In this document: positions 2,351-64,000 of the stretch, piece by piece | Layout of the letters: every line of letters begins with the position of its first letter | Position numbering within the stretch: position 1 is the stretch's first letter | Origin: Hemiscyllium ocellatum | Lineage: Eukaryota | Assembly (NCBI RefSeq): GCF_020745735.1 | Contig: NC_083409.1 | Coordinates: 16,230,789-16,294,788 of the forward strand | DNA: 64,000 bases | Direction: 5' to 3' | Notes under the pieces: model-generated | The model's database searches: none | Told to the model about the DNA's origin: nothing | Seen by the model: the letters and a program-made list of their open reading frames with translations, nothing else | Made by a program: the position numbers and the translations under genes

Positions 2351-2593
2351 CCTCCTGTGCTGTCAGATTCCAGGGAGTGCAGACAGTTTACAGTTTTCTC
2401 CCATCTCAGTAACAAACACCCAGCTGCTCCAAGCTCTTTCTTTCACTTCCTCTCTTGATGAAGTTTCAACCTTGTGCTCTGACAGTCTTTGCATTTATTT
2501 TTTACACTGGGGCTTTCTGCTGTGGTCAGAATCTCTAATAATAAGTGTTCAATCAGTGACAATCACAGCAGCTAAGAGCAGTCAGGACTGAGG
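2351..2593 (-). promoter_or_regulatory. Candidate B-cell enhancer block, copy A
   Basis: CAGCTG 2421-2426, TTTCACTTCC (EICE reverse) 2441-2450, TGTGGTC 2521-2527, CTAATAATAA 2535-2544; ~95% identical to 22240-22482. Confidence 0.5.
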
Positions 2594-3275
2594 AGCCAGG
2601 CTCACTGGGAAACACATTGGGAAGATCAAAGCCATCCTCTTCAGCTCCTGGTACAAGCTCCATCCCTCTCCCTGAGCACTGTCTGCTGCTCAACCAGACT
2701 CTTTACAACTTTGGCCTCATCTTTGGGGCTGATTTGAGGCCCAAATCCTCCACATCACAATTATCAGCCACTGAAAATCTCAACCATGTTTTTGTGACCA
2801 TTCCAATGATATCCAGGCCCACATCACAGCCACTGACTTCCGTAAACATCAGCTCATCCCAAACTCTGCTGTCTGTTTTCAAACTCACACCAAGTCCACC
2901 CCATACCCCTGCCCAAACCTCCCCACCCCACCATGACCACCACAATCCTCACTGACTGACATAAGCTCCTGGTCCAGCAACACCTCGATTTTTAAATTCT
3001 CATCCTTGTTCTCAATCTGCTCCCTGTTCTTCCACCCTCCCTATCTCTGTGACCTCCTCCAAGCTGCCTCACTCAGTGTGATCAATAATCTTGGATATAT
3101 GGCTCTCTGTTTCTTCATCCAAATCATTGAGAAATATCGTGAAAAGCTGAGGTCCCAGCACAGATCCCTGGGAATACCACTACTCACATCTGTCTCATTG
3201 GAACACACGCACATTATCCTTCCTCTCTGTCTCCTAGACAGACCCATTCCTGACCCAAGGTAAATGCATTTCTCA
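2351..3275 (-). repeat. Inverted segmental duplicate of 21588-22482 (copy A)
   Basis: Reverse complement aligns with 21588-22482 including a shared L2-to-CR1 fragment junction. Confidence 0.9.
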
Positions 3276-9920: not shown

Positions 9921-10771
9921 GACTGTAGCCTGAGACCCGGTAATCCAAGATGGCCGCAGAGTCAGACACTTCAGAACGAGTTCATCTGCTCCGTCTGTTT
10001 CCTTTTCTTCTTTCTATCCCACTTCTCTTTTCATTTTCTTTTGTGTTTTTCTTTTGTCCTTCTCCCTAATTTCTTCTCCCGGACTCGGACTCCCAGCCTC
10101 AGTTACCAGTCCTCTGACCCAGTGCAGACCTAATGATGTGGCCTCTTGGCTTGATGTGGCAGTGTCCTGGCCTGGCAAGGAGACCTTCCAGAGCTGAAAA
10201 TGTGTTGCTGGAAAAGCGCAGCAGGTCAGGCAGCATCCAAGGAGCAGGAGAGTCGGCGTTTCCGGCATGAGCCCTTCTTCAGGGATACCTTCCAGCCCAA
10301 CGAGGCAGTCCAACATGATGGCCTCTGTTTGATGTGGTGGCCTCTCAGCCCAGCGTGATGGTCACTCGGCCTAGTGTAGCGATCTCTGAGTGGCCCAGAG
10401 TGGTTCTCTCTCAGCCCACATAGTGGTCCTTTCTGTATATGGTGGTCTCTCCACCCGGGAAGGCCTCAGCGTGGACTTCCGGTCTCGAGATGATGACTTA
10501 AAGAATAATCCCATGGTAGCTAAGTTCTTAAGAAATGCTGTAATGTTTGAACTTTCAGCTTTATTTCTTCATTTTCTACTTAAAACTAAAAAAGATCTGC
10601 AACGTGTAACCTTGAACTTTATTCTTTCTTTCTACCTTGTTCTTACGATTCTGTACTGAGGTCCTTGTACCTAAGATGGCGCCTTGTGAGGTGACGTTAC
10701 ATACTTTTCACTGTACTCCAATACTTTTGCAATCGAGAACACGTGACAATAAACTTAAATAAAAATCAAAT
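9921..10771 (+). mobile_element. Non-coding retroposed element (non-autonomous LINE derivative), family not identified
   Basis: 8-bp TSD CAATATCA (9913-9920, 10772-10779); CAAGATGGCCGC near 5' end; GTGACAATAAA then TCAAA-like tail. Confidence 0.6.
10192..10286 (-). mobile_element. 95-bp PLE pLTR mini-insertion with mutated hammerhead
   Basis: TSD ACCTTCCAG 10183-10191 / 10287-10295; minus strand CTGAAGA-A-GGGC-TCAT-GCCG-GAAACGCC. Confidence 0.85.
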
Positions 10772-19404: not shown

Positions 19405-20690
19405 AACTGAGGAAGCTCAAAGGAACAGAGTGATCTTGGGGTGCTTCTCCACTGATCCCTGAATATGGCAAGACAGGTTAACAGAGCAGTTATGAAGGCA
19501 TAGGGGACACTTGCCTTTGTCATTTCAGGTATTGGTTATAAAAGCAGGAGGATATGGTGCAGTTAAGCAGAACATTGGTTAGGCCACAGCTGGAGTACTG
19601 TGTGCAGTTCAGGTCACCACACTGTAGGAAGGAGGTGATTGCACTGGATGGGGTGCAGAGGGGAATCACCAGGATGTTGTGTGGGATGGAACCTCTCAGT
19701 GATGAAGAGAAATTGGATCAGCTCGGGTTGTTTTCTTCAGAGCAGAGAAGGTGGAGGGGGGCCCTGATAGAGGTGTATAAGGTTATGAGGGGAATGGACA
19801 GGGAGGAGAGAAAGCAGCTGTTCTCCTTCTTGGGAGGGTCAATAACAAGTTGACTCACATTCAATGTGAAAGCTAGGAGGCTTCAAGATGTTTTAAGGAA
19901 AATGTTTTTCATCCAGAGGTTGGTGTGCATCTGGAATGCACAGCCAGAGAGGGGAGTTGAGGTGGGAAACCTCACAAAGTTTAAAATGTACTTGGGTGAG
20001 CAGTTGAAATGTCATAACATTCAAGCTGTGGGCCTCATGTTGGAAAGTGGGACTGGTATAGGTTTAGTGTAGTGTGGCTGGTACACAGTTAATGAACTGA
20101 AGGGCCTCCTCTGTACTGTGTGATTTTATGATTCTGTCGTGGGTAGTTTCAGGCTCCTTAACTGAGGAAGGATGTTCTGGCTGTGGGGGGAGGGCAGTGA
20201 AGGTTTACCAGACTGATTCCTGGGAGGACAGCACTTAGATCTGATGAGAAACTGGATCAGTTAGGATTATATTCATTGGCACTTAGAAGATTGAAAGGAA
20301 TCATATTGTAACCTTGAAAATCCGAACAGGACAAGACTAGAACAACACAGGGAGGATGTTCCTGATGACTGGGGAATCCAAAACTACGAATTATGGTTTA
20401 AAGAAAAGGGAAAGGTTATTTCAGACTGAGCTGAGGAGACATTTCTTTAGCCAGAGACTGGGAAACTCGTGGAATATTCTATCACAGAAAGCAGTTGAGA
20501 CCAAAACATTCAATATTTTCAAGAGAGGATAAGTATTTTCTTAGGACTAAAGGGGATAAATTTTATGGAGAAAAAATGGGAGCAGGGGACTAAGTTGGAT
20601 GATCAGCCGTAGTCATATTGAATGGCAGAGCCAACTCGAAGGGCTGAATGGCTTCCTCTTGCTCCTAGTTCCTTTGTTTCTATGTTTGTT
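19405..20690 (+). mobile_element. Two further CR1 3'-end fragments
   Basis: ORF 19554 (LVRPQLEYCVQF); tails ending near 20135 and 20690. Confidence 0.8.
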
Positions 20691-20699
20691 CATAAACAT

Positions 20700-21590
20700 G
20701 GAAACATATGGAATTATAGAGTCTTAGAGCCATCGAGTCCTACAGCACAGAGACAGGCCCTTTGGCCCAAACTGGACCGTGCTGACCAAAATTTCCATCC
20801 ATGCTAACCCCATTTCCCTGCACTTGGCCCATATCCTTCAAATGTTTTCCTATCTATGTATTTGTCCAAATGTCTTTTAAATGTTGTTAATGTATCCACC
20901 TCAATCACTTCAGCTGGCATTTCATTCCACATGCGTGCCACCCTCTGTGTAAAAATGTTGCCCCTCAGGTTCCCTTTTATTCATTTCTCTCTAACACTAA
21001 ACTGATGCCCTCTCATCCTCGATTCTCCAAACCTATCCATGTCTCTCATGATCTTATACACTTCTAAAGGTTTCCCAACCAGTCTCCTACACTCTAAGAA
21101 AAAAGTCCTAACTTGCCTAACTTCTCCCTATATGTTGAGTCCAGGCAACATCCTTGTAAATTTCTTCTGTACTCTTTCTGGTTTAGTAATATCCTTCCTA
21201 TAACAAGGTGACCAAACTGAATACAATATTCCAAGTGCGACCTCACTGACATCCTGTACAAGATTAGAGATTAGATTCCCTCCAGTGTGGAAACAGGTCT
21301 TCGGTCCAACCAATCCACACCGACCCTCTGAAGAGTAACCCACCTAGACCCATTTCCCACTGACTAATGTACCTAAGACTATGGCCAATTTAACATGGCC
21401 AATTCACCTGACCTGCACATCAAACTTACTAATCATGCCTTACAGTTTCTCATCCAAATCATTAATATTGATAACAAACAGTAATGGGGCCAGCACTGAG
21501 CCCTGAGGCACTCCACTCAACACAGGCCTCCAGTCTGACAAGCATCCTTCCAATATTACCTCTGCTTCCTATCATCAAGACAGTGATAGA
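20700..21590 (-). mobile_element. CR1 3' fragments plus partial HE1-type SINE tail (21261-21420)
   Basis: Reverse-complement CR1 tail and RT-end motifs. Confidence 0.75.
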
Positions 21591-22482
21591 AAAGTATTTG
21601 TCTTTGGTTAGGAATTAGTTTGGAGGTAGGAGACAGAGAAGAGGGATAATGCTGACCAATAAACAAGATGTGAATAGTGGTGTCCCTAGGGATTTGTGCA
21701 GGGGCCTCAGTATTTCACGATATTTCTCAATGACTTGGATGAAGGAATAGAGAGCCAATTATCCAAGATTGCTGACCACACGGAGTGAGGCAGCTTGGAG
21801 GAGGTTACAGAGATAGGGAGAGTGGAGGGCAGAGAGGGATTTGAGAACAAGGATGAGAATTTAAAAATCGAGGTGTTGCTCGACCAGGAGCCAATATAGG
21901 CACGGGGTGCAGGGGGTTGTGGGAACGGGACTTGGTGCAAGTTTGGATACGGGCTGCAGAATTTTGGATGAGCTGAAGGATACGGAGGGCAGTGGCTGTG
22001 ATGTGCATCAGCCATTGGAATGGTCATGTTTGGAGCCCCATAAACATGGCTGAGATTTTCAGTGGCTGATCTTTGTGATATGGAAGATATGGGGCTTAGA
22101 TCATTCTCAAACATGAGACCCAGTTTGTAAAGAGTCTGGTTGAGCAGCAGACAGTGCTCAGGGAGAGGGATGGAGTTTATACCAGAATCTGAAGAGGATG
22201 GCTTTGACCTTCCCAATATGTTTCACAGTGACCCTGGCACCTCAGTCCTGACTGCTCTTAGCTGCTGTGATTGTCACTGATTAGACACTTATTATTAGAG
22301 ATTCTGACCACAGCAGAAAGCCCCAGTGTAAAAAATAACTGCAAAGGCTGTCAGATCGCAAGGTTGAAACTTCACCAAAAGAGGAAGTGAAAGAAGGAGC
22401 TCAGAGCAGCTGGGTGTTTGTTACTGAGACGGGAGAAAACTGTGAACTGTCTGCACTCCCTGGAATCTGACAGCACAGGAGG
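21588..22482 (+). repeat. Inverted segmental duplicate of 2351-3275 (copy B)
   Basis: Aligns to the reverse complement of 2351-3275. Confidence 0.9.
22240..22482 (+). promoter_or_regulatory. Candidate B-cell (Ig kappa) enhancer block, copy B
   Basis: TTATTATTAG (MEF2 consensus) 22289-22298, GACCACA (RUNX) 22306-22312, AAAAGAGGAAGTGAAA (PU.1/IRF EICE) 22377-22392, CAGCTG 22407-22412; all retained in copy A. Confidence 0.55.
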
Positions 22483-22639
22483 CTGGTTCTAGGATTTATT
22501 TTTTGCAGAAACAGCACAGTTTTGGAAAAGGTGTCAGTCACTCTCTCACAAACACACACGCCTGCACTCGGAGATCAGAAACAGAATCCAGCAGCAGCTC
22601 TGTCTCCAAGCTGTGAAACCTGCACAGAATTGTTCCCTC

Positions 22640-23165
22640 ATTCAGTTTATAACTGGCAGGATAGACCAAGCAGGGAAGGCAACACAGTGGTGTGTACAGT
22701 CGGAAGGGAGTTGCCCTGAGAGTCCTCACCATTAACTATGGAACCCATGAAGCCTCATGACAGCAGGTCAAACATGGGGAAGGAAACCTCCTGCTGATTA
22801 TCACATAGCACCGCCCTCCCCTCCAACCTCAACTGAGCAGTCAGTCCTCCTCCATGTTGAACAACACTTGGAGGAAGCACTGAGGATGGGAATGATGCAG
22901 GATATACCCTGAGTAAGGGACTTCAAAGTCCACCATCAAAAGCTGCTCAGAAGCATCACTACTGAGCAAACTGGTCACGCTCCACCTGATTCAGCTGCGA
23001 GACTGGACCTGGGGCAGGTGGTGAGGGAACCGACAAGAGGGAAAAACATACTCACTATCACCTTCACCAATCTGCCTGCTGCTGGTGTATCTGTCCATGA
23101 CAGTATCAGTAAGAGTGACCACAGCACAGACCGTGTGGAGACAAAATCCTGTCTTCCCTTTGAGA
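22640..23165 (+). mobile_element. L2/CR1-group LINE APE fragment
   Basis: VREPTRGKNIL..ISKSDH; homologous to 290-760. Confidence 0.8.
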
Positions 23166-24465
23166 TTATCTTACATTCTGTTGGGCAAGAGATATGGAAT
23201 GTCAGAAAGAACTTTGATTTTAGCAGCAATTGTCAAAGTCTTGGAAATTAGTGCCCATTCAGGTGAGACAGGTGAAGAAACTCAGTGATTGCAATGGCAG
23301 ATTGGATGGGCTCTTGATGGAAATAAACCTGCAAGGCCCTGGGGGTCGAGTAGGGGAGGGGGTGGGACTGACTGGATTGCTCCATGAAATGACCTGACAG
23401 GCTGAATGTTCTCCCCCTGTGCTGGAAATAGGTCTCACTCAATGAGGGGTTCACAATTAGAGAGTCTGGATGCAGTAAATACAGGACAAATTGTTTCTCC
23501 AGGCAGGAGGGTCAGTAACCAGAGGGCACACATTTCAGAAAGGGTCTGAAGTACAAGAGAGAAGATAGGAACATTTTTTATCCAGCGAGTTCATGATGAC
23601 TGTCTGCAAGGTGAGTGGAAGTGGATTCAACAGCAACTTTCAAAAGGGCATTTGGAGAAATAGCTGAAAAGGAAATAATTGCAGGGTTATACAGGAAGGG
23701 CTGGGGAAATGGGACTCATTGGACTCATTTGACTAACAGTCGCAATTAACCCAGTGACCTCTGTCTGTGCTGTTTTAGAGCTTACACATACTTAGACTCA
23801 CCTTTACACAAAGACTGGGAGAAACAGACAACCCAGTTTACAGAAGAGTGTTTTCTCAAGGAAAACTCTCTTGAACCAACTCAGGGAACAGGCCAGACTA
23901 GATTTACTGATGAGGAATAATTCAGCAAATCAATGGCAAGGGAACAGTGAACCAAAAGTGATGGGATTGAACAGTATATTCAATAGCACAACCATTCAGA
24001 GGGGGAGGGATCAAGGGCAGGAAGTCCGAGAGCATGCTGTAGGGGTCTGAAGGCTCTGCTGTCAATGGTGGGATGGAGCAAGCAGCAATGGGCAGGAGAC
24101 CAGAGACAGAAGATGGAAGGGGGAGAGAGGGAATGTGAGTCTGCAGCAGGACACAGACGGAGGGAGGCCATGGTGGCAATTGGCTGGCAGTGAGGTCAGG
24201 GGTCATTCTGGAATGAGAGATGGATAAGACAGGGAAGGGCCCACTCCATATCAGACAAATTGGAGTTTATGGAATATGGCTTTAGGAAGCTGGGAGAGGA
24301 CATTAGAATCATAGAGTTAGGGGGCAGGACGAGCAGGAATTAGGGTTTCTGTGGTCAAGGGGGCGAGGTAGTGCAGAGACAATGTTGTTGAGATTGAAAT
24401 AAGAGGCATACGTGATGGAAAGGATGTGGGGTTTGCAGCTCAGGTGCTGGATAGTCCTGAGGGAA

Positions 24466-24596
24466 GGAGGGCCATGTTTACTGGTCTCTTCTGGAGCATC
24501 CAGTGGGAAGGAGGTCCCTGTTTATTGGTGTCTATTGGAGGTTCCAGTGGAAAGAGGTCCATGTTTATTGGTGTCTATTGGAAGGTGGTCCATGTA
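24466..24596 (+). repeat. ~43-bp minisatellite, left part
   Basis: About 3 diverged units of GGAGGCCATGTTTACTGGTCTCT..GGAGGTTCCAGTGGGAA. Confidence 0.75.
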
Positions 24597-25992: not shown

Positions 25993-26484
25993 TCATGGAC
26001 TCCAAGGTGAGTGTGGGGTTCAGTTCCTTTCTGTTGTAACTGTGTAATGGTTCAACCCACATCCCAGTAAAACACCCTGACTCAGAGACTGATCATGGAA
26101 AGGGAAAGAGAGGGGTAGGAGAGGGGAAGGGATTGGAAAATATTGTGAATGGACAGGCTGGATCAGTGGGTCAGAGCCTGTGCTGCCCCCCCACCCAGCT
26201 CACACTGATGGCCTGAGGATCTCCTCTCTCTGCTGGGCCTTCATGGAATGAGCTTTGTGTCCAAACCAGTCTCCAGTGAGAACAGGCCAAAAGCACAGAA
26301 CTGCCCTTCATTTGACAAGAATCTAGCCATCTTTCTGAGAGAGGCCAAATCCAGGTCAATGTGGAAAATGGGGCCTTAATCCAGGGGAAAACATGCTTCT
26401 GGGGTCAAGGGTTAACATCCATGAGTGGGGCAGAGAGAGGGAGATTCATCCTGAATTCAACTGCCACAACCTGGGACACTGTGA

Positions 26485-27884: not shown

Positions 27885-27980
27885 AGGAAGTGTGAGGGGC
27901 TGACGTGGCTCTCTCTGCCTGATGCCATTTACATACTGAGGAACACCCAGTCAGACTCTCACAGGCTGCAGCTTTATAAA
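27885..27980 (+). promoter_or_regulatory. V-gene promoter
   Basis: AGGAAGTG 27885-27892, TGACGTGG 27901-27908, octamer variant ATTTACAT 27927-27934, TATAAA 27975-27980, about 60 nt before the leader ATG. Confidence 0.7.
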
Positions 27981-28040
27981 GCAGAGCCCAGTGAAGGGAG
28001 AATTTATCAGGAACCAGGCACAGGGACAGGAGCACACACC

Positions 28041-28089
28041 ATGATTTCACACATCCAGTTAATCTGGCCCCTGGCATTCTGTGTCGCAG
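28041..28089 (+). CDS. IGKV: Ig light chain leader exon (MISHIQLIWPLAFCVA-G)
   Basis: ATG, hydrophobic peptide, phase-1 GT donor at 28090; intron 28090-28275 ends in CTCAG. Confidence 0.9.
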
Positions 28090-28275: not shown

Positions 28276-28572
28276 GTATCAGTGGGGACATCATCATGAC
28301 CCAGTCTCCCCCGGTGCTGTCAGTGGGACTGGGCCAGACTGCAACCACCACCTGTATGACCAGTCAAAGCATTAGCAGCAACCTTGCTTGGTACCAGCAG
28401 CGAGAAGGTCAGAAACCCTCTCTCCTGATCTATGATGCAACAACTCGATTCACAGGAGTCTCCGATCGATTCACCGGCAGTGGATCAGGGACCAGTTTCA
28501 CCCTGACAATCAGCAACGTTCAGAATGAGGATGTCGCTGAATATTACTGTCAGCAGTATAGCAGCGGGTCTT
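28276..28572 (+). CDS. IGKV: Ig kappa-type (shark type III/NS4-like) V segment, unrearranged
   Basis: [64 protein letters not shown]; both Cys and the Trp present, open frame. Confidence 0.96.
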
Positions 28573-28600
28573 CACAGTGATACAGAGCCATACAAAAACC
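28573..28600 (+). other. 12-bp-spacer recombination signal sequence
   Basis: CACAGTG + ATACAGAGCCAT (12) + ACAAAAACC, consensus heptamer and nonamer. Confidence 0.97.
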
Positions 28601-29044: not shown

Positions 29045-29083
29045 GGTTTTTATACAGCCTCTGCACTGGGAGCTCTCACTGTG
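29045..29083 (-). other. 23-bp-spacer recombination signal sequence of J
   Basis: GGTTTTTAT (one mismatch to GGTTTTTGT) 29045-29053 + 23 nt + CACTGTG 29077-29083. Confidence 0.95.
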
Positions 29084-29118
29084 GTACACGTTCGGTAAAG
29101 GAACCAAACTCAGACTGA
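29084..29118 (+). CDS. IGKJ: Ig kappa-type J segment (YTFGKGTKLRL-S)
   Basis: F-G-x-G motif directly after the 23-RSS; followed by GCAAGT rather than GTAAGT. Confidence 0.93.
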
Positions 29119-29544
29119 GCAAGTAAACCTCAATTGTCCGTTATTAACCCTGTCAATACTGAAATACACTTTCTAAAACACAAATGCTGAATTGTTGAAG
29201 GTGTTAGTGGGGAGCTGCAGTGAATGAAATGGTTGATTGAGGAGCACTGTGGCGAACAGGGTGTCCAGCTGTACTTCTTTAGTTCCATTGCCCCGCTTAA
29301 GCAGCAAGACAGAAGTCAGTCAGTTTTACTCACTGTGTGGAGGAGCTCTGTCCATTTTCAGCCTGTGGTCCCATTCCTGCAGCATGGAGTGAAATCAGTG
29401 AGTAGCCTCCTGCCAGTCTCAGTGTGACAGACTCAGGGCAGATTTTGATGTGAGCTCTGGATCCCTGTCCCAGTCTCTGATCTCACTGACCTCAGCAGCA
29501 GCAGCACAGTGATACACCGAGCTCCCACCTCCCCCAGCTTTAAC

Positions 29545-37505: not shown

Positions 37506-37639
37506 TTAAACAATGCCTGTTCTTTTCTGGTGTTTGTTAGGTACTGGCTACAAATGTTCAAACATTTTATCAGTGAATATTCTGACAGTTGAAATCACTT
37601 CAAATGGCAGGGATTAAAATTGTTTCTCTTGTCTTTCAG

Positions 37640-37968
37640 GCCATGACAACTCTCAGCCCAAGCTGACCCTGCTGCCCCCCTTCCCGGAGCAGGTCAATGC
37701 CAAGGGCACGGCCACCCTGGTGTGCCTTGCCAATCACTTCTATCCCGATGAGCTGGAGGTGCAGTGGAAGAAGGACGGTGCAGTCATTTTGGACGGGGTT
37801 CATACCAGCAACTACCTGCGAGCTTCGGACAGCACCTACAGTGTCGGCAGCCTGCTGACCCTCTCTGGGTCTGACTGGGAGTCCAACGCTCGTTTCTCCT
37901 GTGCCCTCACCCACATGACCCTCTCCTCTCCCCTCAGCAAGAGCATCAGGAGATCAGAATGTGTGTAG
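37640..37968 (+). CDS. IGKC: Ig kappa-type constant exon, open frame
   Basis: TTTCAG acceptor; (S)HDNSQPKLTLLPPFPEQVNAKGTATLVCLANHFYPDELEVQWKKDG..FSCALTH..SECV-stop; both domain Cys, Trp and penultimate Cys present. Confidence 0.96.
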
Positions 37969-38395: not shown

Positions 38396-38511
38396 CGGGC
38401 ATTGGATAGGCATTTGGAAGTTATTGGGCTAGTATAGGCTAGGTAGGATTCGGTCGGCGCAACATCGAGGGCCGAAGGGCCTGTACTGCGCTGTATCCTT
38501 CTATGTTCTAT
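38396..38511 (+). mobile_element. 116-bp CR1 3'-end insertion in the C 3' UTR
   Basis: Absent from the paralogous UTR at ~62945-62955; flanked by AAG (38393-38395, 38512-38514); CTATGTTCTAT tail. Confidence 0.88.
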
Positions 38512-38615
38512 AAGTGTTTTCCTCAAGTTCCATTGTGGCTGTGAATTTGTGCAGCTTCCTCTGTCTGGGCTGTTAATTGCTGACTGTTTTCTGTCAATGT
38601 CAATCTGGAAAAGGG

Positions 38616-38621
38616 AATAAA
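38616..38621 (+). terminator. Probable polyadenylation signal of the central cluster
   Basis: AATAAA conserved in the paralog (62843-62848); homology between the paralogs ends about 40 nt later. Confidence 0.75.
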
Positions 38622-38849
38622 GATGAAGAAGATTCAGTCTCTGTCTCTGTGTGCTTTGGAGATTGACCACTCCATTCAGTTGATTGGCTGCATTTCAGCA
38701 TGGCATTGTCACAATTGGCTCATTGGCCTGTCAATCAATGACACATCTGTTGTAGAGGATACTGACAGCCAATCATCAATCACTTTCAAATGATCCCTTT
38801 GATCTGGAATCTGTGGAGGTTACAAGATTCCTAACAGATCTCCATTAAT

Positions 38850-63373: not shown

Positions 63374-63701
63374 CTACACACATTCTGATCTCTTGATGCT
63401 CTTGCTGAGGGGAGAGGGGAGGGTCACGTGGGTGAGGGCACAGGAGAAGCGAGCGTCAGACTCCCAGTCAGACCCAGAGAGGGTCAGCAGGCTGCTGACA
63501 CTGTAGGTGCTGTCCGAAGCTCGCAGGTAGTTGCTGGTCTGAACCCCATCCGAAATGATTGCACCGTCCTTCTTCCACTGCACCTCCAGCTCATCGGATA
63601 GAAGTGATTGGCAAGGCACACCAGGGTGGCAGTGCCCTTGGCATTGACCTGCTCCGGGGAGGGAGGTAGCAGGGTCAGCTTGGGCTGAGAGTTGTCACGG
63701 C
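63374..63701 (-). pseudogene. IGKC: Second Ig kappa-type constant exon with 1-bp deletion (pseudogene or assembly error)
   Basis: 328 nt vs 329 nt; TATCC-GATGAG vs TATCCCGATGAG at 63596-63597; otherwise ~95% identical to 37640-37968 with an intact acceptor at 63702-63703. Confidence 0.85.
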
Positions 63702-64000
63702 CTGAAAGACAAGAGAAACTATTTTAATCCCTGTAATTCAAAGGGATTTCAACTCTGTAGGTTCACTGGCAAAACAATCCATTTGAACATTTGTATCCAA
63801 TACCTAACAAGCCCCATAAAAGGACAGGGACTTTTAAAATTGCTTCTTGTTATGTGAGTGTCACTGGAAGGGCCAGCATTTATTATCCATCCCTAATCGC
63901 CGCTGAGAAAGTGATAGTGAAAGAGAAGGGACAGTTTTGGACCATCATTTTTGGAATGTATGTGAGCAGCTGAAAGGGCTATCAATGGGGGAGCATTTCA

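Follow-up and report, generated by a model that had tools for sequence, protein, structure and literature searches.

The immunoglobulin (Ig) enhancers of teleosts (catfish and zebrafish IgH 3', cod IgL) are downstream or intronic, contain octamer and E-box sites and have been functionally tested. Sharks carry tens of separate V-J-C mini-loci, and how one shark mini-locus turns on while others stay silent is the question on which the element described here bears. A limiting promoter-enhancer complex has been proposed for the activation of shark Ig genes, with no element named (PMC2435157), and we found no enhancer of a cartilaginous-fish Ig gene described in the literature that was searched. 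Among tetrapods, the Ig lambda enhancers of human, mouse and chicken share E-box, NF-kB, MEF2 and PU.1-IRF4 sites, and those of mammals have a further E-box downstream of PU.1 (PMC3972084). The 10-mer GGAAGTGAAA stands in lambda-B, which is a natural site for PU.1 in the mouse Ig lambda 2-4 enhancer (PMC4872103). The chicken 3'Core contains E-box, core-binding-factor (CBF) and PU.1 sites; mutation of these enhancer sites impairs the targeting of hypermutation, and in chicken cells Ig enhancers with such sites target hypermutation with little effect on transcription (PMC3972084). Here we analysed a 64-kb stretch of the genome of the shark Hemiscyllium ocellatum (contig NC_083409.1; the whole stretch is called the window, and positions are those of the window unless another locus is named). 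We found that positions 22130-22482 are a discrete 353-bp non-coding element of the orectolobiform Ig kappa mini-locus, which lies upstream of the leader in V orientation. The position, orientation, copy number, conservation and motif spacing of this tract are direct observations. The reading that we favour, at about even odds and judged from its sequence, is a per-cluster B-lineage cis-regulatory module of the enhancer type.

The window contains one complete Ig kappa mini-locus on the + strand (cluster 1) and two copies of the tract. Copy B (HocB; 22130..22482, + strand) belongs to cluster 1 and ends 5.56 kb upstream of the leader ATG at 28041, in agreement with the original prediction, which had placed a candidate enhancer about 5.6 kb upstream of V. 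Copy A (HocA; 2351..2704, - strand) is inverted. The V of copy A would fall off the left end of the window, and therefore only copy B is tied to a V here. A third copy was not found in the 64 kb, even by a low-stringency search. When 22240-22482 (+) was compared with 2593-2351 (-), 13 of 243 positions differed (94.7% identity), as had been claimed. The high identity also extended to about 355 bp as stated, with 22 of 355 positions different over 22128-22482 (93.8%), and it fell as expected in the co-duplicated flank 21588-22117, to 72% counting gaps (85% and 73% in two sub-stretches). The contrast between tract and flank in copies A and B is strong (Fisher p = 7e-18, and 8e-4 against the best gap-free flank). 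Homology between the two copies continues to the left as far as 21588 at 72-85%, through a long interspersed element (LINE) reverse-transcriptase fragment and older repeat-like DNA, and ends abruptly on the other side at 22482 / 2351. What had to be revised was the size of the conserved unit. The 243-bp block of the original prediction (22240..22482, +) is the motif-rich two thirds of the 353-bp tract and is 69-95% identical among the six copies that we compared.

We used V and full-length kappa proteins to reach annotated genes in other sharks and compared the surrounding DNA of five loci of Chiloscyllium punctatum (L001-L005) and one of the zebra shark, Stegostoma tigrinum (L006). L003 and L004 have less than 3 kb upstream of V and were left out of the tract scoring. 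The comparison covers three species, all orectolobiform, and six tract copies: HocA, HocB, two in L001, and those of L002 and L006. Of the 5 scorable clusters, 4, spread over the three species, have the tract upstream of V and oriented like it, at a distance from the leader ATG that ranges from 2.4 to 6.4 kb. One copy per cluster at a fixed position had been expected; the upstream placement and the orientation held up in these four clusters, while the distance proved variable and no copy was found in the gapped 14 kb upstream in L005. Since the tract recurs upstream of V, in V orientation and with the same edges, it is part of the cluster unit and not a dispersed repeat.

The tract of C. punctatum L002 (3268-3615) lies 6.4 kb upstream of the ATG and is 92.9-93.7% identical to copy B and 93.5-94.3% identical to copy A. 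Identity is 75-79% in its left flank and 85% in the right flank that is shared, and no other segment of this comparison rises above 87%. In the zebra shark the tract (L006, 7295-7634) is found 2.4 kb upstream of the ATG and is 87.5% identical to copy B. The window from about 19.8 kb to 38.4 kb is collinear with C. punctatum L001, which has two tract copies. The direct one lies 4.7 kb upstream of the leader ATG in V orientation and is 77% identical; the second is inverted at the edge of the locus, in the same head-to-head layout as in the window. In both species the kappa clusters stand in head-to-head pairs with their upstream tracts facing, one of each of the two flank types described below (window 2351-3273 and 21588-22482; L001 29-1644 and 4839-5296). 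Because this layout is found in the window and in L001, the pair looks like an old duplication unit. We also observed that the gene at L001 10239-11198 is already joined in the germline: its V ends at 10519 and abuts J (10544) without intervening recombination signals, and the tract upstream of it is degraded.

All four motifs named in the original prediction are present and identical in copies A and B. A MEF2-like site, TTATTATTAG, lies at 22289..22298 (+). It is followed by a RUNX-type site, TGTGGTC (GACCACA on the + strand), at 22306..22312 on the - strand within the near-invariant TAGAGATTCTGACCA, by the Ets-IRF composite element (EICE) GGAAGTGAAA at 22383..22392 (+), and by the E-box CAGCTG at 22407..22412. 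The RUNX site is kept in five of the six copies, the EICE is identical in five of six and in all three species, and the E-box is present in every copy. From the start of the EICE to the start of the E-box there are 24 bp (a 14-bp gap) in all five copies that have the EICE, and the RUNX-to-EICE distance measures 76 bp in four of these copies and 74 bp in the remaining one. The MEF2-like site fits YTAWWWWTAR in only half of the copies (3/6); the zebra shark, with a 2-bp deletion, and both L001 copies depart from this consensus. Thus of the proposed MEF2-RUNX-EICE-E-box module the last three sites and their near-fixed spacing are conserved and the first is not reliably kept.

Two near-invariant islands, GTTTGTTACTGAGA and GAGAAAACTGTGAA (22416..22447, +), had not been named before, and together with TAGAGATTCTGACCA, a third stretch new in this respect, they are among the least-changed 12-mers in the four copies that were new to the comparison. 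In these four copies 9 changes fell on the 33 motif positions where 17 were expected, a borderline deficit (P = 0.05), and the RUNX, EICE and E-box positions alone took 4 changes against 11.8 expected. That the 13 differences between copies A and B all miss the 33 motif positions is unremarkable (P ~0.15 at 95% identity). A site at about 22455-22465, which could be read as EBF- or kB-like, is deleted in the zebra shark. The NF-kB consensus GGGRNNYYCC was found in none of the six copies, the octamer and CTCF-core consensus had no match in the tract copies, and a C/EBP site was not found conserved in the tract.

Whether copy B is compared with copy A, L002 or L006, the tract ends at the same two edges, 22130 and 22482. 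Several left flanks are seen, and on the right at least two flank types of old date. Type 1 follows copy B and the inverted L001 copy; type 2, which resembles a short interspersed element (SINE), follows copy A, the direct L001 copy, L006 and L002. L002 carries an extra insertion exactly at the right edge and a 235-bp insertion exactly at the left edge. The zebra shark is without the repeat-derived 21588-22129, and there DNA homologous to window 19980-20335 directly abuts the left edge of the tract. A large insertion inside the tract was seen in none of the six copies. Since insertions and turnover occur at both edges and none inside, DNA turnover hugs the edges of the tract, which suggests, from few cases, constraint on its integrity. 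As a separate observation, window 22594-22767 is 95-96% identical to L005 8327-8500, with the next 2.7 kb at 87%, and could be another conserved part of the type 1 flank.

Any two of the tracts of copy A, copy B and L002 share 93-94% identity, whether they come from one species or from two (HocA-HocB 93.8%), and the zebra shark tract is 87-88% identical to each of these three. Among these copies the tract was kept above its neighbours: 93.7% against 79% for the flank between copy B and L002 (p = 5e-10), 94.3% against 85% for the shared right flank between copy A and L002 (p = 1e-4), and 87.5% against 77.5% for the adjacent flank between copy B and the zebra shark (p = 5e-4). In the zebra shark comparison no other segment of the cluster is kept as well as the tract, with the V region at 84%, J at 83% and C at 83%; its excess is significant against the adjacent flank and the C region and not significant against the V region.

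The original prediction had left selection and gene conversion side by side as explanations of this likeness. A recent conversion event between copies A and B was dropped as an explanation, as L002 and L006 share the edges and the identity between species equals that within the genome. Under concerted evolution, copies within a genome should be more alike than copies from different species; we found 93.8% within the genome and 93.5% and 92.9% between species, without clustering by species. Since the close copies are equally alike across species and within one genome, recent homogenisation does not explain their identity. Conversion as an explanation is thereby weakened, yet an older form of it still fits most of the numbers.

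In that older form, the tract would be neutral DNA that once served as a unit of gene conversion or unequal exchange among a subset of kappa clusters; its high identity would reflect a more recent common ancestor than that of the flanks rather than function, and its motifs would be incidental. We think this unlikely, although it is the alternative that survives best. It is consistent with the sharp edges and with the jump in identity from about 72-79% to 92-95%, and with a left third that is highly alike in the four close copies only. The L001 copies have drifted to 65-77% beside an apparently open gene, the C exons of both window clusters likewise resemble each other more closely than their flanks do, and the star-like 3% of change per copy could date from one event. 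However, a within-genome identity of 93.8% that is no higher than the 93-94% between species leaves no such event since the split of Hemiscyllium and Chiloscyllium. In the zebra shark, identity in the tract exceeds that in the adjacent flank and the C region and, without reaching significance, that in the V region; changes tend to fall outside the RUNX, EICE and E-box sites, whose spacing is fixed, and large insertions are found at both edges and never inside. The zebra shark identity, the clean edges and the pattern of change together suggest constraint.

A number of observations weigh against the enhancer reading. In the left third (22130-22239) the four close copies share 81-96% identity but deep comparisons give only 55-72%, a pattern that fits shared ancestry or conversion as well as constraint, and in the L001 copies it is no better kept than ordinary flank. 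In a 1.6-kb alignment of copy B with the inverted L001 copy, the block is not an outlier. The statement that the tract is kept above neighbouring non-coding DNA holds among the four close copies and not clearly against the L001 copies. The identity of these two to the close copies has fallen to 74-77% and their mutual identity to 65%, and the cluster beside one degraded L001 copy has an open, germline-joined VJ-C gene. The tract identities given above are judged against flanks and exons rather than against a calibrated neutral divergence between species. The sparing of the motifs is borderline as noted, GGAANNGAAA occurs 4 times in the window where 3.7 are expected, a chance frequency, and the motifs were matched to supplied consensus strings rather than scored matrices. 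Finally, in the C. punctatum cluster of L005, whose V, J and C matches look open, no tract was found in the 14 kb upstream, in a gapped draft with a tandem array at that place. The collinearity of L005 with the window stops at 22594 against a repeat, the tandem array and assembly gaps, and L005, 87-88% identical to cluster 1 over 8 kb, may be a paralogue. The array itself (L005 1550-5540) consists of units 70-78% alike, plus gaps, at the expected site of the tract.

A second alternative, rather unlikely in our estimate, is that the tract is a cis element of another kind: a promoter of a sterile or antisense transcript by which the cluster is opened, a boundary between head-to-head clusters, or an element that acts mainly in targeting recombination or hypermutation and less in raising transcription. 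The head-to-head arrangement with the tracts between the clusters, seen in the window and in L001, counts in its favour. Small public sequencing runs from three further organisms that are guessed to be RNA hold 7-21% of the sampled 31-mers of the tract (22118-22482); these RNA-like runs may, however, be DNA or background. The chicken Ig enhancers with the same site types, which target hypermutation with little effect on transcription (PMC3972084), also speak for a function of this kind. With the consensus strings that were tried we found no CTCF-core, TATA or initiator-type match in the tract, and the motif set is that of lymphoid enhancers.

It is very improbable that the tract is a transposable element or dispersed repeat whose promoter-like motifs are its own and which lies near Ig genes by chance. 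Some features of its ends recall mobile DNA. The LINE reverse-transcriptase fragment at about 21700-21790 is followed by old transposon-like sequence, which the left third continues. In the type 2 copies the final 13 bases, ACAGCACAGGAGG, pass into SINE-like sequence, and several right flanks at one edge resemble the end of a mobile element. However, when assembled contigs of four related organisms were aligned to 20500-24499, the tract was covered by about 7-24 contigs per genome and the neighbouring SINE by more than 128. All four copies whose V side is visible lie upstream of a kappa V in the same orientation and with homologous flanks, and we saw neither a target-site duplication nor terminal repeats belonging to the tract. 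Homology to the diverged L001 copies extends over its full length, and therefore the tract is not a presence/absence insertion. A dispersed repeat unlinked to Ig genes, an outcome raised with the original prediction itself, was thus rejected: the window has two copies in 64 kb and no other match, the contig depth is low, and the tract is collinear within kappa clusters of other sharks. The organisms of the aligned contigs have diverged by 2-4% across the whole stretch, and their contigs are therefore uninformative on selection. An exon or a structured non-coding RNA gene is scarcely credible: on the opposite strand of copy A a 105-codon frame stays open through the block and the RNA-like runs hold some of the words of the tract, but stops in copy B break that frame, the copy A translation matches no protein, and a structured RNA was rejected with no Rfam match at E <= 1 and folding z-scores of 0.21 and -0.90 against shuffles.

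If the tract is a B-lineage enhancer, its sites point to a mode of action. A PU.1/Spi-family factor would bind the composite site GGAAGTGAAA together with IRF4/8, an E protein would bind CAGCTG 14 bp past it, and a Runx factor would occupy TGTGGTC 76 bp upstream. Jointly the bound factors would open the cluster for V-J joining, would drive the V promoter with its ATTTACAT and TATAAA, and would perhaps help to target hypermutation. A wider and distinctly more tentative possibility is that the grammar of tetrapod light-chain enhancers (an Ets-IRF site with a nearby E-box and RUNX/MEF2-type flanks) was already present in the cluster loci of cartilaginous fish, and that each mini-locus has its own upstream copy that decides activation, rearrangement and mutation cluster by cluster.

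The gene that copy B would serve is cluster 1. Its leader exon (28041..28089, +) begins with the ATG at 28041 and was located by tblastn with residues 1-17 of P0007 (100% identical). The V-kappa exon with its 12-spacer recombination signal (CACAGTG, 12 bp, ACAAAAACC) spans 28276..28600 on the + strand, with the exon reaching to 28572. In a protein search with the V frame the best named relatives were shark kappa light chains, with the top match, at 99% identity, from Hemiscyllium ocellatum. The J segment with its 23-spacer signal (GGTTTTTAT, 23 bp, CACTGTG; signal 29045-29083) lies at 29045..29121 (+), and the C-kappa exon (37639..37968, +) has an open frame that ends in the stop codon 37966-37968. 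The V promoter region, as read from the sequence (27927..27981, +), has an octamer variant, ATTTACAT, about 110 bp before the leader ATG and a TATAAA about 65 bp before it. The exact ATTTGCAT was not found near the V of cluster 1. An Ets-type site, AGGAAGTG, and TGACGTGG lie farther upstream in this promoter region.

Several other features were observed in the window. A second kappa cluster is inverted at the right end, where only its C exon is visible (63377-63708, -). Compared with cluster 1 this exon has a 1-bp deletion at about 63598 (= 37744) which shifts the frame, and it is therefore a pseudogene or an assembly error. About 540 bp beyond the C stop, the two window clusters share a 160-bp block (38506-38663 and 62958-62799) at 95.6% identity, and the identity of this block drops to 82% in C. 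punctatum L005 and to 72% in the zebra shark. An upstream island about 1.7-1.9 kb before the leader ATG (window 26111-26390, L002 8377-8652, L003 48-443) is 87% and 83% identical in the two C. punctatum clusters, above neighbouring non-coding DNA; no match to it was listed in the zebra shark locus L006. To the left of the tract, a SINE/LINE insertion at 20710..21595 is private to copy B and breaks the older upstream homology: contigs of three other organisms join 20709 to 21596, and contig depth over the insertion is very high.

We found no published description of the tract. New here are the precise extent of the 353-bp unit, the finding that some copies are diverged or missing, the unreliable conservation of the MEF2-like site and the test against recent conversion. 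For the kappa clusters of sharks the tract is a short, sharply bounded candidate element with a testable pair of sites. Should it prove active, the logic of PU.1/IRF and E-protein light-chain enhancers would be pushed back to the base of the jawed vertebrates and would be shown to work from an upstream, per-cluster position. Should each mini-locus indeed depend on its own copy, the "limited holocomplex" model of shark Ig exclusion (PMC2435157) would become physically accessible through the tract.

We compared the tract with the described Ig enhancers. The mouse Ig kappa 3' enhancer is alike in its composite element for PU.1 with IRF4 and in its conserved E-box; it differs in lying 3' of C-kappa in a single large locus and in having a conserved NF-kB site (PMC3972084). 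A further difference is that it acts together with the intronic and distal enhancers. The mouse Ig kappa locus and the shark cluster both have a 12-spacer signal on V and a 23-spacer signal on J. Teleost Ig enhancers, including those of cluster-type light-chain loci, have E-box-type sites like the tract, in which their octamer was not found. The chicken Ig lambda 3'Core, a DIVAC element, shares with the tract the E-box, a putative core-binding-factor (RUNX) site, the PU.1 site and its short length (PMC3972084). It differs in that it is defined by its activity in targeting hypermutation, lies downstream of C and has a C/EBP site.

The tetrapod Ig lambda enhancers (mouse E-lambda 2-4 and 3-1, human Ig-lambda E and chicken cIg-lambda E) depart from the tract first in position: they lie downstream of C, whereas the shark tract lies upstream of V, one per V-J-C mini-locus. 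In all four clusters with a visible V we found it 2.4-6.4 kb upstream of the leader, and not downstream of C or in the J-C intron. The tract also lacks the NF-kB consensus of these enhancers, and in it the RUNX site is prominent and the MEF2-like site is confined to half of the copies. Thus the tract differs in its position and in the NF-kB site; on paper it does resemble these enhancers, a likeness of site types for which we claim no homology of sequence. Both are a few hundred bases long, the order of MEF2-like site, PU.1-IRF site and downstream E-box matches that of the tetrapod enhancers (PMC3972084), and the Ets-IRF site of the shark tract is identical to the GGAAGTGAAA of mouse lambda-B.

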